A stretch of DNA of 34,087 bases from Ministeria vibrans ATCC 50519 (GCA_943704425.1 CALSCP010000352.1:1-34087); one strand, 5' to 3'. Positions 1 to 20,285 are shown, counted from the stretch's first letter. Translations and numbers: made by a program. Notes: generated by a model not told the origin, from the sequence alone.

Positions 1-86
<86 letters not shown>

Positions 87-112
87 CTTTATTTCTCTCT
101 CTCTCTCTCTCT
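1..112. repeat. (CT)n microsatellite in a GPCR intron
   Basis: Read directly from the sequence. Confidence 0.95.
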
Positions 113-144: not shown

Positions 145-3100
145 CATTCCGGCTGCCAAACAGACTCTGCGCACTCTTGTGCTGAACCAAGAAAAGAATC
201 AACTCATTGCCATTGTCAACTCTGAGGGTAATCTTATTCAATAATAGTAAAATAAGTAATAGTAGTTTTAACGCTTCCTCTTCTGTTCTTAGCGCCTCGC
301 TTCTCCCTGGGCGGGTCCGTTCCCGACATATTTTATGCGTACATTGCAGTGTTTGCGAGCGACACGGGATTGCTTTTGAATGCAACGAGGTTTGGTGAAG
401 GTGGCGGAGAACAACTGCTGGCAGGCGTGATCGATCAAGGATCGCTGTATTTCTGCGGGACGTCCAAGTCGGTGCTCATCCATGGCCATGTAAATCCAGG
501 TGGTTTCAATACAGACGCAGTGGTGATCAAGATGAATGCCACGACACTCGCTGTGGTCGCGACGCACTTTGAAGGATCCAACGAGCTGGACGTGCTAAAA
601 TCGATTACGGTTGACGCCAACGACAATGCCGTCTACGCTGTGGGCTATACCCAGGGCGGTGGATACGCACAGAATGTGCTTGTTATGCGTCTCACACTCG
701 ATCTCAAAGTGGTCTGGAAGCAAGTGCTGGTGGACAGCGAACCAACTTGGGCCATGCGCTTTGGAAATGCTATTGGTGTCGACTCACTTCTTGGCATTGT
801 TTACATTACAGGTGCCATCCAGGGCGCAGCCATTGATGGCCTCTTCGTCACAGTCAATGCCTACAGTGGCTATGCCAAAAGCACCGTGGTTGATACGGAC
901 ATGGGTAATGTCATTGGCTTCTCCATCGTGGTCGATCAGACCTCTCACTCCGTCTACCGCGTCTCAACGGTCCAGGCCAGTGCGCCACCCATCTACGAGA
1001 ACACGAAACTGCAGTCGACATGTCCTCTTTCAGCGCTCACCGGCACCTGCGCCTGCCCTACACCCTCGTACTCTTCTCTTGGATGCCAGCAGAGTCCATG
1101 CAACCCGAACCCTTGCTTGAACGGTGGCACTTGTGAAGTAGTCGACTCGAGCACATTTATCTGCCACTGTGACCGCGACCCCGAGTGGGATGGCAAGTAC
1201 TGCTTCACATCAACCTGCCCGCTGTGCAACCAGGGTGCGTGTTACGCGGCACGTTCTACCGACATCGCCGCAAATACCCTCGTGTGGTCAAGTGCCACCA
1301 CTGGTGCCGGTCTTCGCTCCACCGCTCGCTTTCGTCCCACTGCCGCAAATACCTTCTTTTTTGCGGGTGAAATCCATGGAAACGCCATTTTTGGTCCCAT
1401 TTCCGCCAACGGTTCTACCACAGTTGTGTGGGCATTTCTCAATACGGTCGACGGCTCACTGACGACGCCAGTGGCTTTCGACGCACGCAACGTCTCCCTC
1501 CGCACCATCTATTCTTACAAAACCTTTCTCGATTTTCGCTACTTTGTCGCTCTGAGCGCTCCAGGAGCACAGTCTACCGTCTTGCGGCTTGACACGCTGC
1601 TTCAAGTCGTCGTCGAAGCTCAATTGTACGAGTTGTTATCTACTAATTTCTCATCTTCTCATCACTCTCTTAAATGTTCTCTCTCTATCACTTTGTCTCT
1701 CTCTCTCTATCACTTTCTCTCTCTCTCTTTTACTTTCTCTCTCTCTTTCTCTGTCTTTCTCTCTCTCTCTCTCTCTTGAACTCTCTCTCTCTCTTGAACT
1801 CTCTCTCTTGAACTCTCTCTCTTGAACTCTCTCTCTTGAACTCTCTCTCTTGAACTCTCTCTCTTGAACTCTCTCTCTTGAACTCTCTCTCTTGAACTCT
1901 CTCTCTTCAAATCTCAACTCTCTCTCTTGAACTCTCTCTCTTGAACTCTCTCTCTTGAACTCTCTCTCTTGAACTCTCTCTCTTGAACTCTCTCTCTTGA
2001 ACTCTCTCTCTTGAACTCTCTCTCTCTTGAACTCTCTCTCTCTCTCTCTTGAACTCTCTCTCTTGAACTCTTGAACTCTCTCTCTTGAACTCTTGAACTC
2101 TCTCTCTCTCTTGAACTCTCTCTCAAAAATACCCATAGCCCTCTTGATGTGTATGCTATGGATTCGTTGCCCTATCATGGCCCTGAATTCTTGGCGCTCT
2201 GGGGAACCTCTACACGTACTAACAACTAAGAACGATGTAAACGCTCACAACACAAAAAAATAATAGGGGACATTTACAATACGACGAACAAAGGTGGCGA
2301 AGACTCGTACGTGGTGATCGTGTTTGGCGCAACACTCCAGTTCTTCAGTGCCACTCCAATTTTTTCTGCTTCCGGTGGCAATGACTCGGTGCGTGTGGCC
2401 ACGTTTGATGAACACCGACAGTCGTCGTATGCCGCTGGAATGACCTCGGGCAATTTGGGGGGTGCTCATGTAAGCTTTAATGACATATTTGTCGCCCAGT
2501 ACTCCTTTACCTTGTTCACCATTACTGCACTGGGCCACGTTGGCAGTACTGGCGATGATGTGTGTACGAGCATTGCACTGGACACCTCTGTGGGCACTCT
2601 CTTTGTCGCAGGCTATACCACAGGTGATTTCCCCGCTTTTGGCCAGAGCACCACTGGTGTGCACTCGGCACTTTTGGCGATCTTCACCAACACACTCGAC
2701 CTTGCGGATGTGAAATTGTTTTTGGGTTTCGAGAGCAGCAGTAGCGTGCAGGCAGTCAAGTTGGCCGTCGACATCACTTGGCATGCTCTCTACATGGCCG
2801 CATCCGAGATTCGCAACCCAAATAGCCCCACGACCGAGTCGGGAATTGTTTACCAGCTTAATTCGGTGACCGGTGAGCGTTTGGGACAGACAGCGCACCA
2901 CAACGACCAGACTGATCCCGACTACTACCGCGTGAGTGACATTCATGTGGATAGTGAAACACACGAGCTTCTCCAACTGGGCATGTTGGGTCAAGCTTCG
3001 CTGTCGCAGTTTGTCGTGGAAGCCCCAGTGAATGTGAGTCAATTCAGTACCACAAATGCCAGCTGCTTGTGTCCTCCTGGATCCTCGGGCGACCAGTGTC

Positions 3101-5601
3101 AGTTTACCACGTGCGACTCGTCGCCCTGCTTTCACTATGGTGTATGTGTACCTGCGCTCACGTCGTACACTTGCCAGTGCGCCTCAGGCTACTACGGCGC
3201 ACACTGTGAGTTTTCAACAGACTGTGGTCTCTGTGGTGTGGCCGACTGTCTTGAGGCACGAAACTGCTCAAATGATGTAGAGCAGTCGTTTTTTTCGGCG
3301 GCTGTGAGTTCTCCATTGAACAAGGCAAGGGTACATCTGAGCTGGTCTGATTCCAACCAAGACACAGTCTTTTTTGCTGGTAACATAAAATTTGCCGAGA
3401 CGTGGGGCTCCATTGGCATTGCAACGCATGATAGAGTTGTCTGCAGCCTCATTGGTGTTCCAACGGGCGTCGAATGGACCAGCGTGTACCTGCCCGAGTC
3501 CCAAGTCCATGACATTGCCGGCAGTACCGTTCGTCCCAATGGCACTCAGTCTCTCTTTTATGCGCTCTCAGCCGTCGACGTTGGGGGTAGCGCCGACTTT
3601 GCAAACATTGACATTTTGGATTCAACTTTGTCTCACGTCCAACGATTGCAACTGTAAGATCTCTCTTTTGGCTGTCCTGTTGCGATCTAAACTAAAAATG
3701 ATCGGTCCTTCTTTTTTTATAGGTCTGATTCACTTGGAATATACCCGACAGAAATACTGTACAACTTTGTTGATGACGTTCTCATTATTCTGTTCTACTC
3801 CTCTGGTAAGAACAAGTGCTGAAAATAGTGCAACGCAAGTTTTAATAATAACACTAAAACTGAATCATTATCGGGGGGGTGGTGGGTTTTTTTTTCCTAT
3901 TTTGTTTATAGCTGTGTCTCTGTACGGGATCAGTAACAATGGTGGTGTGGATGGATATATTCTCCTTCTAAATCCAGTGACTCTGGCGACTCTGTGGTCG
4001 CAGTCCACCTACTCACTGTCGGGCAATGATGATTATCTCAAGCATGGTGTGGTCGACGAAGCCGCTCAGTATGTGTACGCGGTGGGTGACACTCTGGGGG
4101 ATTTGGGGGGGACTTCGATGGGTGCACTTGATGTCTTTGTGGTGAAGCTGCACGCTGCCAATGGCACACGCGCATCCAATGCTTCCAAGGTTGCGTCGAC
4201 TGAGTCAGACCGGTCGGTGGGCGTTGCTGTGGACACCCTGTCAGGCTTTGTCTTTGTGGCGCTCACCTCGTCGGGTGGTTTTCCACAATTTGGCCTGGCC
4301 TCGTCCAATCAAGAGGACGCGTCCTATTTGGCCGTTTTCACGATTGATGATCTTACACTCGTGGGCCTGAAACGGTCTCTTGAAGAAGATGTGGGGGTAT
4401 CTCAGGCGTTGTCGCTCTCCGTTGACCACACACTTCATGTGCTTTACATGGCCGTACAGCACACAGTCAGCGAAAGAACGCACTCTGTTTTGCTGCAGTA
4501 CAACGCTGCGACTGTGGCACTGACATCGAGAGCAAGTCATTTGGAGGGTCACCCAACAAATTTTGTCATTGCCGATGTGTTGGCGAACTCTGTGCGCGAG
4601 ACCGTCTTGGTGGCAGCCACCTACTATACCGGTGCAACGGATACCGACTACGTCTTTTCAGAGGAATGCCTTGTCGGTGACCGCGTGGTATCCAACCAGT
4701 GTCTCTGTCCCCTTGGCACGTCTGGAGAGCTGTGCACCGTTGACGCCTGCAGCTCCAACCCCTGCTTGAATGGCGGCACATGCGTTGCAGAGTACGGCCT
4801 CTTTTCGTGCGTGTGCTCTGCTTCGCACACGGGTGCACTCTGCAATGAGTGTTTTGGCTGCGGTGCAAGCACCACGTGTGCCGAGATGCGCTCGTGCAAC
4901 AGCTCGGATGCGTCTCCACTTTGGACGAGCACTACGGCGAACAATGGTCTTCGTTACAGGACGGGGCACCTCCATTGGGGCGTCAACACGAGTGAAGTGT
5001 TCTTTGCCGCCAGTGTGGCCGGCGGAGTTTCCTGGTATGGTGACACAGCTTCTACACAAGCGTCTGCCGTGTACGCTTTCATCGATTCCGCCACGGGAAT
5101 CACAATTTCTTCAGGGCGCTCGCCCACCACGAGCCACCATCAGGTTGTTGACACGGCGGTGCGTCGCGACGACTCCAACACGCGCTACTTTCTCTTCTCG
5201 ACAGTGTCACAAAGCGGCTCGAAGTGTGAAATCACATGGCTGGACGCAAACCATGATCATATGGGCTCTCTTAGACTGTAAGCTCTGATATCACAATAAA
5301 TTATGGCAAAAGTAGCATGTGATAACAATAATACTGTGTAGAAATGCCACGGATGGACTGGGTTGCAGTCGGATTCTCTATGATCCCGTTCGAGATGTAA
5401 TTGCGGTGTTTGTACATTCCAGCAGTACGTCATAACGTTCATTTGTTTCCGCGTGTGTGTGTGAACAGAAGAAGGAGCAAAGGAGGAGCTGTGTTTCTTT
5501 CTCTCTTTTTTTCTCTCTATCACTTTGTTTCTTTCTTCCTCCTCTCTCCCTATATATATATATATATATATCACTTTGGTTTTCTTTCTTCTCCTCCTCC
5601 T

Positions 5602-5637
<36 letters not shown>

Positions 5638-7523
5638 AACTCTTGAACTCTTGAACTCTCTTTCTCTCTTGAACTCTTTCTCTCTTGAACTCTTGAACTC
5701 TTGAACTCTTGAACTCTCTTGAACTCTTGAACTCTCTCTTTCTCTCTCTCTTGAACTCTCTCTCTCTCTCTTGAACTCTCTCTCTCTCTCTCTCTTTTTC
5801 TCTTGAACTCTTGAACTCCTTGAACTCTCTTGAACTCTCTCTCTCTCTCTTGAACTCTTGAACTCTTGAACTCTCTCCTGAACTCTCTTGAACTCTTGAA
5901 CTCTCTCCTGAACTCTCTTGAACTCTTGAACTCTCTCCTGAACTCTCTTGAACTCTCCCTCTCTCTTGAACACACTCTCTCCATTAATTTATTGTGGTTG
6001 GTTGTTTAGGCGTTACATACGCGGGTATTTTGAACCAGGGCGAACTAGACGCGTACATTGTGAAATTGGACGCCCTCTCGTTGACTTTTCTCGGGGCGCA
6101 GACACTCGCGTCGAGTGGAAGCGAACGTTTTTACGCGGCGTGTCTCGACGAAGCATCCGAATATTATTACGTGACGGGCACCACCACTGGCAATTTGGGT
6201 GGTCCCTTTGTTGCCGCAACCGACTCGTTTGCGGCCAAAGTGGACGCAGCAAGTTTAAATGTGGTTGCCACGGTGAAGTTTGCGGGAACGGCGACGGACA
6301 GGCCTGCAGATATTGCGGTGGACTCGAGGACAGGACTTATCTTTGTGGTGGGTAGTTCCTACGGCGACTACCCTGACTTTGGGCTTACAATTGATCATAA
6401 TCGTGCAGCAACATTGGCCATATTCACATTGGATATGGTGCTCCTTGACGTGCAATTTCCCGTTGGCTCCTATGTTTCGTATGGCGTTGCCATTACTATT
6501 GACCCGCTCTTGCACATTGCGTACCTGGCCATGTCAGTGACATCCGACCAGCTCGATTTTACCACGGAACACGGTGTAGTGGTTCAAGTGAGCTCGGTGA
6601 ATGGCGCTACGCTGGGCGAGACCAGTCACCACAACGACGTGCCCGACGCACTCTACTACCAGATCAGCGATGTACTGGTCCGCACCGACGATAACATCTT
6701 GTACCAGGTGGGTGTGTATGGTCTCGGGACAGTAGCCGACTTTGAAATGACCACCGAGTGTCACTCAACGGCGGTGCAAGGAAATCTTGCGTGTGTGTGT
6801 CCGTGGGGGTCGAGTGGCGATGGGTGTCAACAAGGTCCGTGCGAGTCAAATCCTTGTTTGAATGCCAACAGCCACTGCTCCAGTGTTGCTGCCGGCTACG
6901 TGTGCACATGTGGTACTGGCTACTCGGGCACCAACTGTGAGATTTCCGACTGTGACTTGGGCGTGTGCGGTGTGAATGCAACGTCGTGCGTAATGAACCA
7001 CGATGGTTCGTTTGAGTGCTACTGTGACAACTCACACACAGGTCGTTTCTGCCAGCAGTATGCCTGTTCATCCGACTGTGGCACGGGCGAGTGCTCCACG
7101 TCACGCTTCTGTGACGACCCTAATGAAAGCGCAGCGCTGTGGACCAGTGTGTCCAGTGGCACTGCGTTCCGCGGGTCCCCGCAGGGTATCATGGGCTCTG
7201 GTGAAAATGAAGTGTTCCTCTTTACCACAATGCACCCTGGCAACGTGTGGTTTGATGGTTCCGTTGCGACACACAAAAGTGCTGTCTATGCTGCCTTTGA
7301 CTCTCACACAGGCTATACAACTGCGACTGGTCGCCTCACTGCCTCAGGACTCAGCTCACTCGATTGTGTCGCTGCCGATTGTGTGGTCCACAGCAGCACC
7401 AAATTCTACCATCTCCTTGTGCGTGTCCATTCGTTCTTTCTCATTGGCTACATTGTCGTCTTGCACCCTGTTTCGCTTAATATCCAGAGTCTCCAGCCAT
7501 TGTAAGCAATATAATTATAATTA

Positions 7524-7605
<82 letters not shown>

Positions 7606-10600
7606 GTTGTTGTTGTTGTTGTTGTTATTATTATTATTATTATTATACTGACCATCTCTTTGTTTAGTGAGTCGGGTGAATCGGTCGATCTGGAAGTGCA
7701 CAATCTGCTGTTCAACTCCAAAAACGATCTTTTTCTCATGACTGTCTCTACTCAAGGTAAGTTGATTGTTGTCTGACACATTTTCTAACGCGCATCCGCA
7801 TTATTTTTGATTTTTTGTGCTTTGCAAATTGTAGCGACGAATTACAAGGGGAAGAGCAATAATGGTGGATTCGATGGCTATGTGCTTGTGCTGTCTGGAA
7901 GCACGATGGCAGATGTGTCGGTGACGCATGTGTATTCAAGCGATGGGTTTGACGACAAGTTTGCAACGGCATGTCTGGACGAAGCGAGTGTGTTTGCGTA
8001 TGCGGCGGGTACGACGCGTGGGGATCTGGGGGGTGTCCAATTGGGAGTGGACAATGTGTTTGTTGTCAAGATTCAAGCGTCGAATGGCTTGGTAGCTGCC
8101 GTGGGCAAAGTGGGCTCGACGGCGTTTGATGCGCCGACCAGTGTGGCAGTCGATACGGCCAGTGGACTGATATTTGTGGGAGGTCACTCGAACGGCGCCT
8201 TCCCGGCCTTTGGTCTTGTTGCTCCCAGTGACCCCACTGCGATGCTTGCCGTCTTTACCATGCTTGATCTTAAGCTGCTTGATGTACAATTGATGACTGG
8301 TTCAACCGAGAGTCGGGGCGTGTCCATCGCCATTGATTATGCACTTCGAATGGTGTTCTTTGCGACCGTGGAGTGGCCCACTCCGTCGGATGAACAGAGT
8401 CAATATGGTCGAGTCTACCAACTCAGCAGTGTGAATGGGACACTCATTGGCGATGTGGATTTTTTGAGTGCACAAGATGACAACGAACTGTACCTGGTGA
8501 GTCAGGTGCTGGTGGATCCTGAACAGCACAAGGTGTTCCACTTGGGTAGTCGGGGCAATGCGACTGTGGCAGGACAGGTCACGGCGACGATCATGTGTCA
8601 GGAAGCGTACCTCTCGTATGCGACCGCCAAGTGTTTTTGTCCATTTGGTGTCTATGGCGACGAGTGTGAAGTCGATACAACCGTTAATGTGTGTGACTCG
8701 AGTCCCTGTGAGAACAATGCGACGTGTTCTCCGGTGGCCTTCCCCTTGTACACATGCGACTGTCTTCCTGGCTACCTTGGTTCCAACTGCGAGCAGTCAC
8801 TCTGCGATTTTAACCCTTGTGCTTCCTCCGCTGCGTGTACCATTACCATGGGCGGGAGCGACCCGTACACTTGTACCTGTCCCTCTGGCTCGACCGATCC
8901 CACCTGCTATCTTCCCGATTGCAATTCGCCCACGAACTGCGGTGTGGGTGTGTGCGAGCACACGGCAAAGTGTGCTTCCATGAGCGGAGTGGATCACCAC
9001 ATTGGCAGTCTCACCAACACAGCTCCTCCCTACGACGTGTCCGGCTCCGTTCGTGCCTTTGTCACCAGCTCCCAGCACCTGTTTGTCGCCACGTCGGTGC
9101 CGTTGAACTCTGTCTGGTACGACCGACCAGCGGCCACCAGGTCACATACGGTGGTTTGGTCACAGCTGAACGGCAAGACAGGCGCCCACATGGAATCGCA
9201 CACGGTGAACATTGACAATCTGAATGCAACGCTGCTCGACGCGGAGCGCGGCGTGGACGACTCTGAGTTCTTTCTCAGTGGCACTGCGTACGTGAACGAT
9301 ACGACATTGTTGGCCTTTGTCTATTCCCCTTTGTGGTCATCTCCCATCCTTTTGGGCGTTGCTTCAACCCAGTCGCAAGCACAAAGCATTGTTTACGATT
9401 CTTTCTCGAAATTGGTCTACGTCTTTATCAATTCTAACCGTATGAGGGGGAGGATTATTAATATTATGCTTATTAGCTTATCATGATGCTTTTTTTTTTA
9501 GAAATATTTCCTGGAATCAACCCTGGAGGGAGTTTGATTATTTATGTGGCAGCATTCAACGCAAGCACGTCAGCACAGGAGTCACTAGCGTGGATCATTG
9601 GAACGAACACGACTAAGCAGCAAGTGAGCGAAGCGGCGCTGTCGCCAAATGGGACGTCGGTGTACATGCTGGGCACAAGTAACGGGCCCCTTGATGACCT
9701 CCCGAACATGGGTGGATTGGATATGATTGTGTATCAGTTGGACACGGCGACCGGTGTGACACTGAACAAGCGGGTCTTTGGCACGAGCAGTGATGACGAG
9801 GCAGGAGATATTGCAGTGGACCCCACGAGTGGCGCAGTATACGTGATTGGTACATCAAGTGGGTCATTTATCCAGTACGGTGTGATTGGCCAGGGCATTG
9901 TCAAGGCGGTTCTCATTAAGATGGATGCAAGCCTCAACGTGGACTTTATTGAGCTGCACTCTGTGACGGGAGCCTTTGCACACGGGATGTGCGTGTCGAT
10001 TGATGCCGCACTGGGTTTGCTTTACTTTGGCACGTACTCTCCACCACCTGCCTCTCCGGGAAATGGCACGGCCGCAGTGACCATCTACGACGCTTCAACA
10101 ATGACCTATCTGGGCTTTGAGACGATTCCATCCGTGGGGCTGCTTGACACAATAGTGGATCCCTCTACACATGGCGTCTATCGGGTGTATGCGCAACAGC
10201 ATCAGAGTGGGAGTGGAATGAGATCTGCGGCATTGGACATTGTGTGTCCTTTGAAGGCTGTCGTGTCGGAGTGTGCGTGTCCCCTTGGGCTTGCAGGATC
10301 CAACTGCAGTCGACCGATTGAATGCTTCAATAGCGGCAAGGTGATCAATGGTGTGTGCGAGTGTACGTTGGTCTTTGAAGGGAAGCAGTGTGAGCTAGTG
10401 AAAAGCCCTGCCTCGGTGATTGCCGATTTGCCTGCGAATCTTGACGAACAAGCGCCGGCACTCTTTGAGGCGCTTGCCAATGCTACCACAGTCAACAACG
10501 CGACGCTCGGTGTGTTTGTGGAGGTATTCTCGACAGTGACGACCGATCCCGTGACCAACGAGGTGAAGAAGATGCTAAGCGAAACGACCACCTCGATACT

Positions 10601-12968
10601 ACTTCAGGTGATGACGAGCTTGGTTGCTGGTCTACCCGACCTCTCTGCGACGCCCACTGCGACGCTTGCAGGACTCGCAGACACCTTTGATAGTTTGCGC
10701 GTCATGAATGCGTTGCCCACTGTGCTCAGCGCCTCTGAGACGTCCACACCCGCACTGCTACTCGAGTCGGTCGCGAAGGCGAGTGTGCAACTGCCAAGTA
10801 ACGACAGTACAGGTGTGGCATGCGGACAGCTTCGGTATGTGCAGTCAAGCAGTGGCAACATTGCACTTTCCGCAGCCTCGTTTGGTCGCGCGGACGCCGA
10901 CAACGCAGTGAGGGATGTACAACTGGAAGGTCTTCCGTCGGGCGTAGCCTTGGCGCTCTCGTCTACGACAGCCGATGCAGTCTTTCAATCGACCAATTGC
11001 ACGCGACTTGTCATTAACACGCTCCAGTCGAGTGAAACATTCTTCCAACCGTCAGTGCGCGCAGTGCGCAGTGTCATTGCAACGGCAACCTTTGTCGATG
11101 TGTCGCTTCCGAACCCACTGCCACGTAATGGCTCGGTGAGCATGGCGTTTGACGTGGTACGCAATGCGGACGTGGATGGTTCGGTGCCAACGTGTGTTGC
11201 GTGGAACTTGACGAGTCGCGAGTGGGACGCGAGCGGGTGCACTGTGCTAGCGTACACGGGGAATCGTGTGACGTGCGAGTGCACCCACATGACAAATTTT
11301 GCCGTTGTTTTTGACCCGTACCGCTCGGAGGCGAGCGAGACGGTGCTCACGGCCGTCTCATACGTGGGTGTCGCACTGGCGATTGTTGCGAGTGCGTCTG
11401 TGCTTGTGGTGTATGGATCGCTACGAAAGCTGCGCACGCGCCCTCTTGTGCTCATCATGCTGTGTTGTGTGGGCATCCTTGCGACCGAAACCATGTTTGT
11501 CGTGGACGCTGTGAGCTCGAGCGCACCGTCGCTGAGCCGTGGCGGGTGTTTTGCATTGGGTCTTTTGCTGCACTACGCCATGCTCGTGCAGTTTGTGGCT
11601 CTTCTCACAGTCGGCGCGGGTTTCCACTACCTGCTTCACGACGCCAAGCAGCTGACAGCGCCCATCGTTCGGCGTCTGATTGTCGTTGTGTTTGTTGTGC
11701 CCGCACTAATTGTGCTTATGTACATTGTTGTGTATGCAGCTGTGCCATCGCTTGACGCACTCGATGCCTATGGTAATGTGTTTGGCGGTGGCAGTGGTGC
11801 GACGGTCTTCTGCTTTGTGCCCAGTGGCGTGTCAATGTGGGTAACTGTTGTGGCCCCCGTCGCAATTGTGCTCCTTGCAAACCTTGTGCTCTATGTGCGC
11901 ATTACGCTGTCGATGCGACGTCAGCAAAAGCTGGTCCCTGAGCGCGCGCGCACGAGTCGCATTGGGGTGTTTATTTCACTTGCGGTGCTCTTGGGCGTCA
12001 CTTGGTTGTGTGCCTTCCTTGTCATTGCCATTCGCTCAGTGGTCGTCCAGTACGTCTTTGTCGTGTGCAACGGCCTTCTTGGGGTGTTTCTCTTTGTGAA
12101 GTACGTGACGCTGCCCAAGGTGCGCCTTGGCTTCCGCGAGCTTATTTCCACCTGGCGACGCGGCGCATCTTCGTCCAAGACGTTGTCGACGCGCGTGAAG
12201 ACGAGCAAGAGCAGAACGACAGGCAAGGGCGGTCGAACTGCGGGCACGAGCAACGGGAGCACACGGTCGCAGCCTGTGTCGTTGCCGCCGCACCAGCAGC
12301 AGAAGAGCGAGGGTCGCATGAGAGAGCGGCGTCTCAGCGACGGCGACTGGAGTTCGAGTAGTGTGCTATCGCCCATGATGGGACGTCGTGCGGGTGACGG
12401 TGGGACGTCGTCGCCACCGGTGTCGCCAGGCCACCAACGCATTGCGTCGCCACAGCGTGACCACTCGCCGTTGTCCAAGTCGCGAGGTGCTTCAGCCATG
12501 TCTATTTTACTGCCCCTGCGCACTTCCAAGGCAACGGGCCGTGCGCCCGCAAGTTCGTCGTTCTTCTCGGACGATCGCAAAGTACGCAACGGTAACAGTA
12601 TCAGCAGCAGTAGTGGGAGAATTGGACATACCAACAGTCTCACAAGCAGCCACAACAACAAGGGGAGCTCGAAGAAGACACATTTGACGCAGGTTGCGTC
12701 TATTGGCGCAGTGCACACAACGCCGTCGACTTCCTCCGGCGGCTCCGAGTGGATTAGCTGCTGGGACGACCCGACCAGCGCAGCCGCGGCTACCGATGGC
12801 CTTTCGCACACACTGCGCTCTCTTGCCCAGTCCTCTACTGCGCCCTCTGCATGCCAGCCCGCTTTCTTTTCGGGTTCTGCTGACGACGAAATGTTTGAAA
12901 TGGAAGACTGTGAAGTCTCAAGACAGTACGAGAGATTTTGTTTGGGTTTGTTTTGTGTTCCTTAATAG

Positions 12969-13019
<51 letters not shown>

Positions 13020-13114
13020 TTTTTGTCTTTTTAGTTTGCTTCAGTCGCGCGATGACTCGCCGCTCAACTCTCCTCGCCGTCTTACCTTTGGTCGTGATCC
13101 GTTTGATGACAGTC
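145..13114 (+). CDS. Giant adhesion GPCR (six SBBP-like beta-propeller modules with EGF repeats, GAIN/GPS, 7TM, Ser-rich tail); 5' end lies outside the window, last exon uncertain
   Basis: Phase-consistent GT-AG exons: 145-227, 293-1625, 2139-2215, 2267-3653, 3723-3805, 3912-5277, 5342-5424, 6010-7501, 7668-7756, 7835-9439, 9502-12925, 13035-13114 (11,102 nt). Propeller motifs such as GTTRGDLGG..G.DNVFVVK and D....VAVD..SG.IFV.G; EGF motifs such as CSSNPCLNGGTC; GPS CVAWNLTSREWDASGC...VTCECTHMTNFAVVF; then seven hydrophobic helices. Confidence 0.92.
1775..2124. repeat. Compound satellite [CTTGAA(CT)n], mostly 14-bp units
   Basis: Tandem cttgaactctctct units inside intron 1626-2138. Confidence 0.95.
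5634..5980. repeat. Compound satellite [CTTGAA(CT)n], variable unit length
   Basis: Tandem units inside intron 5425-6009. Confidence 0.95.
7520..7646. repeat. (TTA)n/(TTG)n trinucleotide microsatellite, intronic
   Basis: Read directly from the sequence. Confidence 0.95.
11192..11315 (+). other. GPS motif with predicted autoproteolysis site H-M|T (11291/11292) and Stachel-like TNFAVVFDP
   Basis: The C-x2-W...W...GC...C-x-C-x-H-M-T-N-F-A pattern matches the established adhesion-GPCR GPS consensus and sits immediately before TM1. Confidence 0.9.
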
Positions 13115-13204
13115 GTAAGATGATGTTCTCTCTCACCTACTTTGTATTGCGTGTATTGTGTTCTCTCTCTCTCTCTCCACTAAAATTTGTTTTTCTTTCT
13201 TTCT

Positions 13205-13230
13205 CCTCTCTCTCTCTCTCTCTCTCTCTT

Positions 13231-13320
<90 letters not shown>
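13205..13320. repeat. (CT)n microsatellite at the GPCR/POLE2 junction
   Basis: Read directly from the sequence. Confidence 0.95.
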
Positions 13321-13323
<3 letters not shown>

Positions 13324-13330
13324 TTTACAG

Positions 13331-13877
13331 CGTACAGTACTGTACGCAGGAAATTGTCGTGTTTGCGAATGACACTCTCAATAAACTCCGTCGCAATGTT
13401 GTGCTGGCGCCCAGCGAGCAGGAACCAGACATCACCAAACACGTACTCGTTGCTCTTTTTCTCTCGCCTACTTTCTTTTGACCTGTGCCGCGCTTCCTTA
13501 GATGGTCAAGACGCTGATTGATCAAGGATCCCTCTCACCACTGTCGCTCCATTCTCAACCGGTGTTCTGGGCACACGCGCACGCACTACAGCTGTACCCC
13601 ATTCCGGACGTGGTAAGAACAATGCCGAGAGAAAATGTCTTTGTGTGTTTTCATGCGCTCATTCAAATGCGTTGCATCTCATTGTTTACATTTACGTGCC
13701 TCTCTCACACTCTGCCTCTCTTCCCAGCTGCTCCTCGCGTGTCCCGGCGAGCCCTTTCACGTTGACTACGAGGGCTGCACTGCCTGCAGTCCCGGCCCCT
13801 TTGACACCACCGGTCAATTTCAAGTCTATTCACCTGCTTCCCGTGAGATCGAGTCCAGCCAAGTTGATCTTGCATAA
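13331..13877 (+). CDS. POLE2: DNA polymerase epsilon subunit B, last three exons only
   Basis: Exons 13331-13442, 13502-13612 and 13728-13877 give VQYCTQEIVVFANDTLNKLRRN...MVKTLIDQGSLSPL...PVFWAHAHALQLYPIPDVLLLA...CSPGPF...FQVYSPASREIESS, matching the POLE2/Dpb2 C-terminus. Confidence 0.9.
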
Positions 13878-14030
13878 GACGCAATCCCCTCCCCCAATTA
13901 CGATGTACAAATTTGCTAATTCACTTTTTTTTTTTTATCAATGGTTCAAGATAATAATAATAATAATAATAATAATAGTAATAACAGTAATAATAGTACT
14001 AATAGTAATAATAATTGTACAATAATACTC

Positions 14031-14795
14031 TCACAAATTACGCATGGGCGACCGTTCGTGTGGGAGAAACGTCCGTGCAGGTAAAAACACATGGTTCGTG
14101 GAAAACCGGGCGAGATTGGTCACGTCGCTCATGTACATGTCAGCAGTACGGCTCAGTCGATGCGCAAAGTACGACTGGTTCTGTACAATCAACACACACA
14201 CAGAGACAGAGAGACATAGAGACATAGAGACAGAGAGACATAGAGACAGAGACAGAGACAGAGAGAGAGACAGGCCGAGGGTAAGATTGTACGATAGGGG
14301 TATGTTGTTTTTTGTGTTGCTTTTACGTAGTGTGTTCGGAAGACAGAGCCAAACTGTTTGTTAAATTGTCCTTTGAGTTTTGCCTGAGTTTCCTTTCGAT
14401 CATTCAGCAACTACACACGCAAGGCAAGGGGGGGAAGAAAAAAAATGAACATATTTTAGTTCAAGTCAGAAGTGAAATACACGGACCGATTCAAAGAAGA
14501 CTCTGTTCAAGTGCAGCTCATCGTGCGAGAGTTGATGGTAGACACTGGCTCGAGCATCGCTGGTGACCTGTGCGCTCTTCATTGCGCGTTGTACGTCAAT
14601 GAGCCAGCGCAGTTGCTGCTGGTACTCCAATCGATTCATCTGTGTCACTTCATCGCTCACTTCCCGGATGATCGCCCCAGTCCGCCATCCCTGAGACACG
14701 CAACATATCACTGAGTGAGCGAGTCATACGGATTTAAAAATTGAAGCAACACTCACAGAACACAAATATAAGTAATAATAATAATAATAATAATA

Positions 14796-14852
<57 letters not shown>

Positions 14853-14859
14853 GTTATTC

Positions 14860-14890
<31 letters not shown>

Positions 14891-17448
14891 ATTATTATTG
14901 TTATTCTTATTATTATTATTGGTATTCTTATTATTATTATTGTTATTATTATTATAATTTATTTTTATTATTATTATTATTAACACAATAATATTATAAT
15001 AATTATATTATTTTGTCAACCAGTGCCACAATCACTCTCAGTGAGTGACGTGTATCATACACGTCACATCTCACACTCATTCAATCTACCAGTGATATGC
15101 CCACTTGGCAAACCACCTCAATATACACTATAATGCATCAAACGTTACTCTTATCGTACGAGTGTTAACGAGGGCTCGTGAAGATCGGTGAAGATCTGAT
15201 CGCCAATGTAGAGCACATGTGAGTTGGGCATTTCGTTCCATTTCGTCAGAAGCATCAAATCCCGACTGTTTCCATTTGCATACACTAAAAATCAACAAGA
15301 AAAAAATATCACAACAATAAACGAACCCAAAATGAAACCCAAAATGAAACCCAAAATGAAACGGAAAAAAGGAAAATATTATCATGACAGTAAATCAACA
15401 GTCTCGAAACAAACGCGAGAAAAGTAGAGAATAGAACACAAAAAACACCAAAACTATAAGAGAGGATTACCGTTGTTTTTCTTAATTTCAGTGACGGTGC
15501 TCCATTTGAGTCTGGGACGATCCGCTCTCGAGATGTCCAGTTGGCGAAAATACCGCGCACTCTCGTCAGATCGAAAGAACTTCGGTTTTTCCGCTGAATA
15601 ACCACATTCAAAAAGAAGAATTATTGGCGATCAATAGATGAACAAGGGCTACAAATCGTAGCTGAAGATGATTATAATGAAAGAACACCAAAAAATTAAT
15701 AAACAAGAAATTCTATTAAGAACGAGTAAACACAATCAGAAACAGAAAATGTGTCATACAAAAACGCTCAAAAATGTAGTACCGTCAACAATAACAACGT
15801 CAAAGAGATCGCGCCAGTCTGAGCCCACGATGGCACTCATTCCGCTGTTCACAAACCCAAACGGTGAATTCGTCAACAGAAACGTCTTTTTCCCTCTCTT
15901 TCCGACCTACAATATTTATTGTTATTATAATATTCTTCTTCTCTTATTGTAATTCTTATTATTATTCGTATTATTATTATTACTTCTTCGAGAAACGCTC
16001 TGAGTTTTTTGTTTGGGTTTAGGAATCTGAAAAAATGGACAGTTTACAAAAAAGAAAAAAAAATATTAATATTATGTGACTAACCGGTCGTAATCGCTCA
16101 TAATCTCGCTGTGAATAAGATGATCAGAATGGAGCTACAGATGGAAGAGACAAAGGAAACAGGGAGTGAGAGTGAGTGAAAAAAAACATGGTTCCCATAT
16201 TGAGGGTGTCCTGAACTTTCAGTCGTGTTTCAAGGTTATATTTGTCATTAGGCTGAGTATTACACTTTGCAGTATAAAGGGTGAGGGTTAGGGTACAGCT
16301 GATACCTCGTTCATGACCCGCTTGACATCCCAAAAGATGGCAGCGGGAGCAAAGCGGACAGAATTGGAAGAGAAGTACTCGACCAAATTCGCCAGAAGGC
16401 ACGCTTCGGGAAGAGAGAACAGATCTGATAGGGATTTCATATGTCCTTCCATGTACTAAAAAACTTTAAAATTAAAAACAAAAAACAATACTCTTAAGAG
16501 TGATGTGAACGTACTTCTTTGGGAATGTGGCGCCCGTTGTAGAAGCGCGTAACGTCATCTTTGGGTACGGGTTTGCGACCACAGTAGACGGTGTCGGATT
16601 GAACCTTGTGGAAGGCATCGATCTTCATGAGAAGTCCCTTGGACGTGTCGTAGTGCAGGCCGCGGATGGCAAACGACGGATCGTACGGGATGTCTCTCAA
16701 CTCGTCCGGAAACTGAATGAATCAGAGAGAGAGAGTGAGAGAGAGAGAGAGTGAGAGAGAGAGAGAGAGTGAGTGAGAGAGAAGGGAGGGAGGGAGAAAG
16801 AACAAAGTGATAGAAAGAGAGAGGAGGGAGGGAGAACAAAGCGATAGAGAGAGAGAATAAAAAGAGAAAAAGAAAACAAAGTGATGAGAGAGGAGGGAAA
16901 GAAAGAGAGATTCTTCTTTTGTTTTCTTGTCCCAGCTTTACCATGTATTTAGAGACAAGACGGTCAACGGCCATGTTGTAGAGAGCCGATGCGAGTTCGT
17001 CGGTGTAGCTCGCGAGGGTGTACTAAGAAATGATTGACAATGTCATAAGAATGATAAAAGTATCGTAATGATAAGACGTATTATATTCGATTTGTTGTTA
17101 CGTCGTAATCAAAGCCAATAATGTCTATTTTGCCCATGTCCAATTCGTTGGACACAAACACGTCGTTTGGATCGATGGGAACCGTTGAAATGCGTTTGTG
17201 GGTAACTGAGTGAGAGAGAGAGAGAGAGAGAGTCAAAATTGAGTCAGACTCAGTCTCTGCGTTGCTCGCGTTCGGTCCAACGTACAGACACTCTCGTGCG
17301 CCTCATCCAAGAATCGCTTGATCTGGCCTATCCTGGCAGCGGAGGTGGACACAGGCAGTGCCTGTGAGAAGGCGTGCGAGGTCGACGAAAACGACATGGC
17401 GAGCAGCGACGGAAAGCGGCCGACGGAATGGCGGAGCGCGCCCAACAT
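14031..17448 (-). CDS. HAD-superfamily 5'-nucleotidase domain protein (NT5DC2/3-like), multi-exon, complete, with a possible mitochondrial presequence
   Basis: Spliced motifs IIGFDYD|[75 protein letters not shown] and FLPHE. The N-terminus is Arg/Ser-rich and lacks acidic residues. Confidence 0.93.
14772..15012. repeat. (AAT)n/(TTA)n AT-rich microsatellite in an NT5DC intron
   Basis: Read directly from the sequence. Confidence 0.9.
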
Positions 17449-17680
17449 TGGTGCCTGGATGGTGCTGACTGGTCGATGGTGAGGCGGGACTCGAGAGAAA
17501 GGCGGAAAGTGAAAAAAAAAATTAAGTGACTAAATTTTCAACACAGCCTCAAGTCAGTCAACTCAGTGAAGTTAGTCAAGTGTCAAATGACAAGACGTGT
17601 CAATTGCCATGTGTATTTGGTTTTGAGTGAAGAATAAGCATAATAATTATTTTATTTATTATGATACAAAAATTTAAAAA

Positions 17681-18376
17681 TCATCGACTGGGCGAAAATT
17701 GTGCATACTGCACAAAAGTAACGAGAGTGAAGATGGAGAGTATTACCTCCAGCCCAAGCAGCACGAGCCCAATGATGCACAGAACATATTCAAGTTGGAG
17801 ACTACGGCTCGTGCGACACATGAAACATCATTAAAAATTGTTGATAGTAAGATGTGTCAATTTGTGTCAAAACTTACACATAGGTTTGCCAGAGCAAATA
17901 AAACAGATAGCACACGCATGTGCCAATGGCGAGAAGCAACCCGCTTAGCAGGGGTATTTTACGCTCGGTAAGGTTGCCTTTGGAGGTGAGAAACAGTCGT
18001 ATGCTCTCAATGAGAGCAAAGACAAAGAGGAGGAAGATTTCCGCTCCCAAACTTGCTGCTTTGTAGGGAAATACACTGCCTTTGTAGATGAAGCACAGCA
18101 TCTCAACGAGCCAGTAGAGTGCAAACCACCAGGTGTTGAAGTAAACGAGCATTTGGAGCGGCAGCGAGGCCATCTGTGTCGGCAGAAAAGGAGGATGCGA
18201 ATGTTTGATTAGGTGCACTCCGACCAGCGAAAGACGGCTATCAGACACATCTCACCACAACACCCGCACGTCCTGGGCAAGCAGCATCAGCGGCAAACAT
18301 AATACAGAAGAGCGAAGTTAGTGGGCTCTCGAAGGACACACTCACACGTCGAGACACACACAACTGTACCGGCCAT
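17681..18376 (-). CDS. TMEM216: Ciliary transition-zone transmembrane protein (TMEM216/TMEM17/TMEM80 family)
   Basis: Probable microexons 18370-18376 and 18256-18272, then SLPLQMLVYFN...KGNLTERKIPL...LLWQTYV|LQLEYVL...FSPSR*, with four hydrophobic segments. Confidence 0.85.
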
Positions 18377-18599
18377 GGAGACAACAGCAAAATAAATGAG
18401 TAAAATGAATACAAAATTAACAATGACTTGAACGTGTTCATGAGTGCGCTATACCTTTCCACACTATGGTGTTTTCATTGTAAGTTATGTTATTTGACGT
18501 GGTTCGATTTAGAACCAATGGAGAGAAGAACTCTAAGTGGAAACTTCATTGAATACTTTGGCTGAATAATTAATAATAAACTCATGAAAAGTTTAGGTA

Positions 18600-19148
18600 T
18601 TAGGGATACACCCTCTCGACTGGCATGCTTCTTGCCTCGGGCTGAAGCTGATACTCATTATGAACGCGCTCAGAAATGTCCTCGATCGACAAGATCCCTT
18701 CGAGATAATCATGGACAGCTGAGTTGCGTAACCCGATCTGGATCGCACGACGATTATCGAGCTTCCGATCGGCTGCATCGTACTCGGGATCCCACTGTAT
18801 GACGACAGGTGCGTCGCGAGTGCCGCCTGTGCTCGAGGGAACGCCAATTCCAACGATTGCATCAAAGGTCGAGCGACGAATAGAAATCGCCAAGACACAC
18901 TCCTGACCGGCTTTGTGGGCCCAGCCGGACCGGTGCATCATCCACAAGAAGCTCGGCTTGATCCAAGTCATGCGGTCGCGTGAGAAGCGCGGACAGGCGT
19001 CGAGGCGTTGATCGCGCACTGCCGCAGACGCAATGTCCCGCGCATACGCCTGGTACACGACCACCGCGTCGTCGTCGAACTGCGCTACCACAGCGCACCC
19101 TGTCACTTCAACGCGCCTGTTGCACCGCTCCCATTCAAGAGTCACCAT
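18600..19148 (-). CDS. DUF4291 family protein, intronless, 182 aa
   Basis: Motifs VVVYQAY, RMTWIKPSFLWMMHRSGWAHKAGQE.VLAI, VIQWDPE and RAIQIGL are typical of DUF4291. ATG at 19148. Confidence 0.88.
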   Translation of the reverse strand: MVTLEWERCNRRVEVTGCAVVAQFDDDAVVVYQAYARDIASAAVRDQRLDACPRFSRDRMTWIKPSFLWMMHRSGWAHKAGQECVLAISIRRSTFDAIVGIGVPSSTGGTRDAPVVIQWDPEYDAADRKLDNRRAIQIGLRNSAVHDYLEGILSIEDISERVHNEYQLQPEARSMPVERVYP

Positions 19149-19283
19149 GTGTGTTGTGAGCGCGAGGAGACGAAAGAGACAAACGAAATGATTAATGAAT
19201 TTCAAATATTCCTTCGTGTTGCGTATTTTCAAACGAAAAGACATTAAACTAATAAACTTACATTCATTCTTCAGTTTTCAGCA

Positions 19284-19875
19284 ATGTCCAAGAAATACGT
19301 GACTCTATTCTACAACGATGGCACTCTGTCCGCATTGCAGGTTTGTGACGTTTTATCGATCAATCCATTTTTTATGCGTCGCTTTTTTTTTTTTTGACCA
19401 TATTGTCTTTTTTTAACGCCCCACACTCCGAAATGGACTGTAGGCACGACCCTTCTTCATTCTGGAGTCGTGGACGATTGATATGATCCGGTCTGCATGC
19501 CACGAGCGCCTCTACGGGACCCCCAACAGCCAGGCGGCGCTGTACACGGACACGGGCATTGTTCTTGACGACTTCGCTTTCATTCCCGACCGACAGGTAA
19601 GCGTGAACCCCCCTGCGCATGCCCCCGCCCCCTCCCACACCTGTGGTGTCTGCACTGCAAGTCCCGCGACCCGTGCGCCTCCCCAAATGCCCTGTTTTGT
19701 CGTCTTGTCCCGTTCTTCCTAAACATGGTCCAATCGTTCTTTTTTTCACTACGTTCTTTTTCTTTAGTGCATCTGCGTTTCCTCGGGCGGTCCGTTTGTC
19801 CCCATCAACTATGGCAGCGCGTCGTCTGCTGCGCCTGTCGCCCAGTCGACGCTGTCGGACTTTGTGACGGCCGCA
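19284..19875 (+). CDS. Protein with N-terminal KHA/doublecortin-like ubiquitin-fold domain (resembles the KCTD9 N-terminus); 3' part not found
   Basis: Exons 19284-19340, 19444-19596 and 19768-19875, all phase 0: MSKKYVTLFYNDG...ALYTDTGIVLDDFAFIPDRQCICVSSGGPFVP. Confidence 0.65.
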
Positions 19876-19924
19876 GTACGGAGCTCGCCCCGATGCCATT
19901 TGCTCCGTCTTGCTCACACGCCTT

Positions 19925-20150
19925 CTCTCTCTCTCTCTCTCTTGAACTCTCTCTCTCTTGAACTCTCTCTCTTGAACTCTCTCTCTCTTGAACTCTCTCT
20001 CTCTCTCTTGAACTCTCTCTCTCTCTCTTGAACTCTGTCTCTTGAACTCTCTCTCTCTCTTGACCTCTCTCTCTCTTGAACTCTCTCCCATACTGATTTT
20101 TTTACTCTTGAACTCTCTCTCTTGAACTCTCTCTCTTGGAACTCTCCCAT
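19925..20150. repeat. Compound satellite [CTTGAA(CT)n]
   Basis: Same unit as the two arrays in GPCR introns. Confidence 0.95.
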
Positions 20151-20172
20151 ACTGATTTTTTTCTCTTCATAG

Positions 20173-20285
20173 AAAATGCCTCGTGGATCTTTGATGATGG
20201 GGCTACGAGCAGTGTGTTGTCATCGCCGCGCGCACCCCGTCTTGCGTTTGATGGGTGGGTTGACGATGGCGAACGACAAGTGTAG
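20173..20285 (+). CDS. Orphan phase-1 terminal exon (NASWIFDDGATSSVLSSPRAPRLAFDGWVDDGERQV*), possibly the GPCR's last exon
   Basis: Polypyrimidine-TAG acceptor at 20172, stop at 20283-20285, then an AT-rich stretch containing AATAAA. Confidence 0.5.

Follow-up and report, generated by a model that had tools for sequence, protein, structure and literature searches.

A probable giant adhesion GPCR gene with tandem SBBP propeller-EGF units in Ministeria vibrans

G-protein-coupled receptors of the adhesion class (aGPCRs) are central to cell-cell and cell-matrix sensing in animals, and the diversification of their ectodomains before the origin of animals is an active question. The domain diversity of the aGPCRs of unicellular holozoans was noted some time ago (PMC3971589), and the main text of a more recent study describes filasterean and choanoflagellate aGPCRs with GAIN and seven-transmembrane (7TM) domains, conserved cleavage motifs, and ectodomains that include EGF and PQQ-type propeller repeats (Garcia De Las Bayonas and King, eLife 2025, PMC12716839). 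Here, we analyze a 34,087-nucleotide (nt) contig of Ministeria vibrans ATCC 50519 (GCA_943704425.1 CALSCP010000352.1:1-34087; C352 below), the whole of which we call the window and number from its first base. The window probably holds most of one large multi-exon gene for an aGPCR with seven SBBP propeller-EGF units followed by a GAIN domain with its GPS, a 7TM domain, and a cytoplasmic tail.

With animal aGPCRs (ADGRG2, ADGRG6, ADGRL3, ADGRF1, and ADGRE5/CD97), the window gene shares GAIN subdomain B, the Cys/Trp/His/Thr pattern of the GPS, a T-x-F-A-V agonist, and a class-B2 7TM domain. It differs from them in having Met at GPS position -1 and no HRM domain, for which no match was found anywhere in the genome, although control genomes were equally blank and the absence is thus weak evidence. 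We know of no animal aGPCR with SBBP propellers or a tandem propeller-EGF array. The same tandem alternation of propellers and EGF domains in a long, multivalent ectodomain is found in LRP5/6 (P1E1-P4E4), LRP4, and LRP2/megalin, but these are single-pass receptors whose propellers are six-bladed and of the YWTD (Ldl_recept_b) type. Because no exon or module of the window gene matched Ldl_recept_b in Pfam, the likeness to LRP proteins is one of analogy or convergence and not of homology. The blades themselves belong to the sequence family of CylK, the top structural match, and of bacterial SBBP-repeat surface proteins. CylK, however, carries an additional N-terminal domain and acts as an alkylating enzyme in cyanobacteria, and the bacterial relatives lack EGF, GAIN, and 7TM domains.

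An earlier sequence-only reading of the window had called the ectodomain architecture unrecognized among animal aGPCRs. The main text of PMC12716839 mentions neither SBBP nor a sevenfold propeller-EGF array, the window modules gave no PQQ match in Pfam, and in the literature covered (for that paper, its main text) we saw no aGPCR described as having SBBP propellers or propeller-EGF units in tandem. The broader combination is less surprising, since aGPCRs of unicellular holozoans whose ectodomains include EGF domains and PQQ-type propellers are already described in the same main text.

The spliced model of the window comprises 13 exons joined by 12 GT-AG introns into one frame of 3,737 amino acids (aa) with a sole, terminal stop. 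It thereby bears out the single chain of about 3,700 aa, with at least six propeller-EGF modules of about 500 aa, that had been read from the sequence. The domain order is seven propeller-EGF units spaced ∼480 to 530 aa apart (six in the window and one on a second contig, C1414), GAIN, GPS, class-B2 7TM domain, and tail. An 11.2-kb spliced frame that is free of stops and has regularly recurring intron phases far exceeds what chance would yield. With its 5' part on C1414, the gene spans more than 20 kb and at least 16 exons and would encode a receptor of ∼4,200 aa. Two paralogous giant propeller-EGF aGPCR genes with the same plan and exon structure were found at C2020:7400-21730 and C642:71000-85000 (L023 to L027 and L033) and are used for comparison throughout. 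The joined translation served for frame, length, and hydropathy, and searches and structure predictions were run on single exons or on intron-free stretches of the paralogues.

Receptor region and predicted activation

The 7TM domain matched Pfam 7tm_2 over nearly the whole profile (Table 1), matched aGPCR entries in the PDB, and was predicted to form seven helices and helix 8. From ∼100 aa before the GPS through the seventh transmembrane helix (TM7), the protein aligned to human ADGRG2 (E = 7.8e-29 over ∼380 residues) and also to ADGRG6, L3, F1, D1, and E5. The GPS reads PTCVAW...EWDASGC...VTCECTHM|TNFAVVF, with the expected Cys and Trp residues and an H-[L/M]-[S/T] tripeptide before TM1, and its Cys, Trp, His, and Thr columns were invariant in an alignment of eight aGPCRs of this genome (the window gene and seven others). 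The TNFAVVFD that follows the predicted cleavage site fits the tethered-agonist pattern T-x-F-A-[VIL], aligns to the Stachel of ADGRG2, and forms the last GAIN strand in the structural model.

GAIN subdomain B aligned by sequence to ADGRG2, helical subdomain A was seen in a weak model (predicted local distance difference test score, or pLDDT, of 59), and Pfam returned no GAIN match. This AlphaFold model of the GAIN-7TM part has ∼7 helices, then ∼12 strands, and then the seven transmembrane helices and helix 8. Its best Foldseek match was the inactive CD97 GAIN-7TM structure (E = 1e-10), and its target-length-normalized TM-scores (TMt) to aGPCR 7TM structures were 0.65 to 0.77. The cytoplasmic tail of 339 aa is of low complexity and 19.5% Ser. 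The assignment to aGPCRs and the succession of putative GAIN domain, intact H-M|T GPS, 7TM domain, and Ser-rich tail proposed earlier were both supported.

By analogy with animal aGPCRs, the GAIN domain would cleave itself at the predicted H-M|T site. The long, rigid, and multivalent propeller-EGF stalk may bind an external partner (a surface, matrix, another cell, or prey), and pulling or removal of the N-terminal fragment would then expose the tethered agonist, which could activate the 7TM domain together with a G-alpha protein of the cell. Should the propellers bind bacterial or surface ligands, the receptor would offer a tractable single-cell model for aGPCR mechanosensing.

The gene could instead encode mainly an adhesion or structural surface protein, with the 7TM domain as a mere anchor or the GPS left uncleaved and no signaling through G proteins, a reading that we consider improbable. 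Several animal aGPCRs have functions that are carried out via the N-terminal fragment and do not need signaling. In the window gene, Met in place of the usual Leu at GPS position -1 would suit such a protein, as would the long Ser-rich tail as a possible scaffold. Yet the 7TM region is the best-conserved stretch between the paralogues, the tethered-agonist sequence TNFAVVF is canonical, and the genome encodes G-alpha proteins, all of which argue for a signaling receptor.

Propeller-EGF units

Six long open reading frames (ORFs) on the plus strand (256-1776, 2230-3654, 3389-5278, 5988-7502, 7789-9483, and 9477-12962) hold the units of the window. They are homologous to one another (23 to 37% identity; E down to 1e-62) and, judged by their sequences, are old tandem repeats and not a duplication made by assembly. 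In the model, the EGF regions begin at residues 280, 764, 1251, 1732, 2264, and 2790, a period of 481 to 532 aa, and each propeller is followed by one or two EGF-like domains. Pfam recognized EGF in five of the six frames; the fourth had only a subthreshold EGF_TEN match. Scores for the teneurin EGF domain (PF25024) were 24 to 28 bits against a family cutoff of 65, pointing to generic EGF similarity.

Propeller matches were weaker, with SBBP detected by Pfam in three of the six frames. For a blade profile built from 17 pre-EGF segments (alignment A2), the CylK beta-propeller was the sole PDB match (six stretches; E = 1.7e-35), and Pfam SBBP (PF06739) matched 9 of the 17 segments (best E = 3.7e-9), consistent with a repeated blade motif. 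Within the genome, this propeller type is confined to the window gene and its two paralogues.

When the A2 profile was run against 1.84 billion representative proteins, 45,809 relatives were found at E ≤ 0.001; rank among them follows repeat number and not relatedness, and the best 150 were examined. Nearly all of these 150 are Cys-poor with bacterial-type leader sequences, and none has a GAIN-7TM part, in keeping with the earlier suggestion of an SBBP-like propeller known mainly from prokaryotes. Two of them (P0006 and P0038) are pieces of the paralogues of this same genome. A few look eukaryotic, including P0060 (GCA_041447055.1) and P0028 (JGI), in which EGF_CA/EGF_3 domains alternate with SBBP propellers as in the plan of the window gene; the EGF-SBBP pairing is therefore not unique to the latter. 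Unlike the window gene, these two proteins are only 980 to 1,226 aa long, have no detected 7TM domain or GPS, and carry a different EGF subtype, and the similarity is distant. Both may be distantly related to the ectodomain module. The ESM Atlas gave weak leads only (0.82; one PQQ_2 cluster and one SBBP cluster).

Since introns divide every propeller of the window among exons, the fold was modeled on an intron-free EGF-plus-propeller unit of the C642 paralogue. The AlphaFold model (pLDDT, 75; predicted TM-score, or pTM, 0.75) is all-beta, with 25 strands after the EGF domain. Foldseek ranked CylK first (E = 3.5e-10), and the best TMt (0.73) came from seven-bladed propellers such as YncE; LRP2 and LRP6 were also present among the matches. 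The model and its matches support a closed beta-propeller for the C642 unit and, by extension, suggest one for the window units, with probably seven blades, a number arrived at by inference rather than by counting.

The locus can be viewed as an analogue of the LRP propeller-EGF array built from an otherwise mostly bacterial blade family. A stronger proposal, which we regard as tentative and on balance unlikely, is that the sevenfold SBBP propeller-EGF stalk is a lineage-specific invention convergent on the LRP-type ectodomain, with blades derived from bacteria and wired to a tethered-agonist GPCR. If this were true, a unicellular relative of animals would have a multivalent receptor that senses force and is directed at bacterial prey or surfaces, and its ectodomain would represent an aGPCR class without an animal counterpart.

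Gene structure and number of genes

Direct joining of the long frames is impossible (e.g., 2+2 bases at the E2/E3 border). Per gap, exactly one well-formed mini-exon (77 to 89 nt; four lie between long exons) restores the frame and encodes a blade-like strand. The intron phases are periodic: every long exon begins in phase 1, every mini-exon in phase 2. Only a 62-nt intron separates E5 from E6 because the equivalent of the mini-exon is fused to E5, one intron being absent. Mini-exon m0, the first exon of the gene on C352, is in frame with the next exon, and its peptide is kept in the C2020 paralogue. E1 is 63% identical to unit 2 of C2020 and E5 is 58 to 67% identical to unit 6. At the 3' end, a donor GT at 12926 carries the tail on to exon m5. 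The terminal exon is 56% identical to that of C2020 over 39 aa (tblastx), and the position of the stop is shared. The bounds of 145 and 13114 assigned from the sequence alone are thus both exact exon borders, but coding runs on beyond the second of them to the terminal exon.

Table 1. Exons and receptor domains of the window gene, in window coordinates
Feature	Position	Strand	Details
Mini-exon m0	145..227	+	83 nt; acceptor ttattag, donor gtaatc; one blade strand of propeller 2
Exon E1	293..1625	+	Propeller 2 (C-terminal blades), EGF region at 1048-1242, propeller 3 (first blades)
Mini-exon m1	2139..2215	+	77 nt; sole in-frame GT-AG solution of the gap
Exon E2	2267..3653	+	Propeller 3 (blades), EGF region at 3064-3267, propeller 4 (first blades)
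Mini-exon m2	3723..3805	+	83 nt; peptide EILYNFVDDVLIILFYSS consistent with blade pattern
Exon E3	3912..5277	+	Propeller 4 (blades), EGF region at 4700-4897, propeller 5 (first blades)
Mini-exon m3	5342..5424	+	83 nt
Exon E4	6010..7501	+	Propeller 5 (blades), double EGF region at 6792-7112, propeller 6 (first blades)
Mini-exon m4	7668..7756	+	89 nt
Exon E5	7835..9439	+	Propeller 6 (blades), double EGF region at 8632-8973, propeller 7 (first blades)
Exon E6	9502..12925	+	Rest of propeller 7 (9502 to ∼10270), EGF-like region ∼10272-10397, GAIN ∼10404-11306, 7TM 11343-12089, Ser-rich tail 12090-12925
GPS motif	11187..11306	+	Pfam GPS, E = 5.6e-12; predicted H-M|T autoproteolysis site between bases 11291 and 11292, followed by tethered agonist TNFAVVFDPY
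7TM domain, secretin/adhesion class	11343..12089	+	Pfam 7tm_2, E = 4.3e-15, 60.5 bits, 247/250 profile positions
Small tail exon m5	13035..13114	+	80 nt, cytoplasmic tail; GT-AG, in frame; 60% identity to C2020 counterpart
Terminal exon	20173..20285	+	113 nt including stop; phase and acceptor fit; preceding intron 7,058 nt

Transcript data are available for the C2020 paralogue. A 2,110-nt spliced transcript, L034 (JGI 3300040761, Ga0439914_055092; protein P0006), is 99 to 100% identical to C2020 and lacks two introns, and this level of identity indicates that the organism or a very close strain was present in JGI sample 3300040761. In L034, a 65-nt mini-exon is spliced between one exon and the exon that follows. 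The junctions of this transcript align to the E1 donor (1625) and the m1 acceptor (2139) of our model, so that the E1 donor is at the position of a splice in the transcript, and m1 aligns with the mini-exon peptide of P0006.

These data bear on the possibility, in our view very improbable, that the window contains several genes, namely, one or more secreted propeller-EGF proteins upstream of a shorter aGPCR that starts in or just before the last long exon. In the ORF listing, an ATG at 9483 does open the last frame, and searches returned no transcript of the window copy. That ATG, however, lies inside the 62-nt GT-AG intron, directly before its poly-T acceptor; at the equivalent position the paralogues lack an in-frame ATG, and their 7TM exon is without a usable start codon. 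A boundary there would also cut propeller 7 in two. Moreover, all long exons begin in phase 1 without a start codon or signal peptide, and L034 represents two C2020 units spliced together. A single gene, as first proposed, is therefore supported indirectly by the fit of the phases, the splitting of propellers by introns, the lack of a usable start in the paralogous 7TM exon, the shared exon structure of the paralogues, and the C2020 transcript.

The 5' end, recognized as open from the outset, continues on another contig. C352 opens at window base 1 with (CT)n, and contig C1414 opens with the complementary (GA)n. The minus strand of C1414:1-3043 (L029/L032) carries the first three recognizable exons of the gene, which share 58% identity with unit 1 of C2020, about the level (55 to 67%) of the other units. 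Based on the complementary ends and the matching identity, we place the contig break in an intron microsatellite and count seven propeller-EGF units, the first of them on C1414. Repeats in introns and at the contig end are probably behind the break in the assembly. Microsatellites of the (CT)n and (ATT)n types, together with a ∼36-nt repeat built on CTCTCTTGAACT, fill window positions 1-100, 1640-2100, 5480-5980, 7510-7640, 12965-13020, and 13150-13320. Near an ATGATG on C1414, there may be a frameshift.

Several points weigh against one complete, signaling receptor gene. The last intron is 7 kb long with other genes inside it, and use of the terminal exon is argued from conservation. A start codon and signal peptide were sought in the 5' part on C1414 and were not located. 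Neither a transcript nor a protein from the window copy was found in word-based protein searches (7TM exon, E5, and GPS-7TM region), whose blanks are uninformative because exact words and a subject length 0.55 to 1.75 times that of the query are needed, or in metagenome scans (E5 protein and a 27-nt stretch inside E5). Confidence in the GAIN-7TM model is low (pLDDT, 59; pTM, 0.38). SBBP scores of the window alone are 17 to 19 bits against a Pfam cutoff of 20.5, and the paralogue on which the propeller fold was modeled, C642, is ∼30% identical to the window units. Cleavage and G-protein activation are predicted from the motifs and from the G-alpha genes (at least three) of the genome, and any coupling or ligand is likewise putative.

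To the idea that the repeat array is an assembly artifact, or that the gene is decaying and unexpressed, we give almost no credence: the assembly is a draft (29.7 Mb in 2,860 contigs), a contig end in a (CT)n repeat cuts the gene, and a 7-kb block with other genes sets the last exon apart, but the 11.2-kb frame is free of stops, the ratio of nonsynonymous to synonymous substitution rates (dN/dS) relative to C2020 is ∼0.25 (0.23 to 0.29 in three exons, with dS of ∼1.2 to 1.4), the small 3' exons retain frame and stop position, and units that are just 23 to 37% identical are therefore not collapsed or expanded copies.

The locus thus yields a curated gene model of near-full length for a single aGPCR gene, which automatic annotation would fragment. 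As the propeller matches fall below the Pfam cutoff, the automatic labels would be only EGF, GPS, and 7tm_2.

On the minus strand of the last intron (13115-20172), we identified genes for a DUF4291 protein (18603-19244; E = 3.4e-51) and a TMEM17-like protein (17877-18248; E = 2e-24), along with further ORFs. The equivalent intron of C2020 is just 54 nt long, and therefore either a block of genes was inserted in the window copy or the terminal exon was displaced.

Paralogues and genome context

In a tree of the individual units, each unit of the window gene has its own partner in C2020, and the C642 units cluster together. The one-to-one pairing implies that the array, which arose by internal tandem duplication, predates the duplication of the gene, and the locus provides an example of growth of a module array by tandem exon-block duplication followed by whole-gene duplication. 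Our searches found no orthologues in other species. In C642, two units lie in a single exon of 964 aa, indicative of intron loss. Three of its units share ∼60% identity, the result of recent duplication or homogenization.

Among the genes of this genome are three for integrin beta, two of the T-box family, and at least three for G-alpha. This gene content, which agrees with the protist origin suggested from the window sequence, fits a unicellular holozoan, perhaps a filasterean. Thecamonas would be an unlikely source, given the single adhesion receptor reported for that organism. About 60 loci in the genome have 7tm_2 matches (e.g., L001, L002, L004, L006, and L011), a large expansion of adhesion GPCRs for a unicellular organism. 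Many of these loci lie in ORFs of 1,000 to 2,500 aa, and several contain a canonical GPS of the form C.C.HLT|S/NFA.

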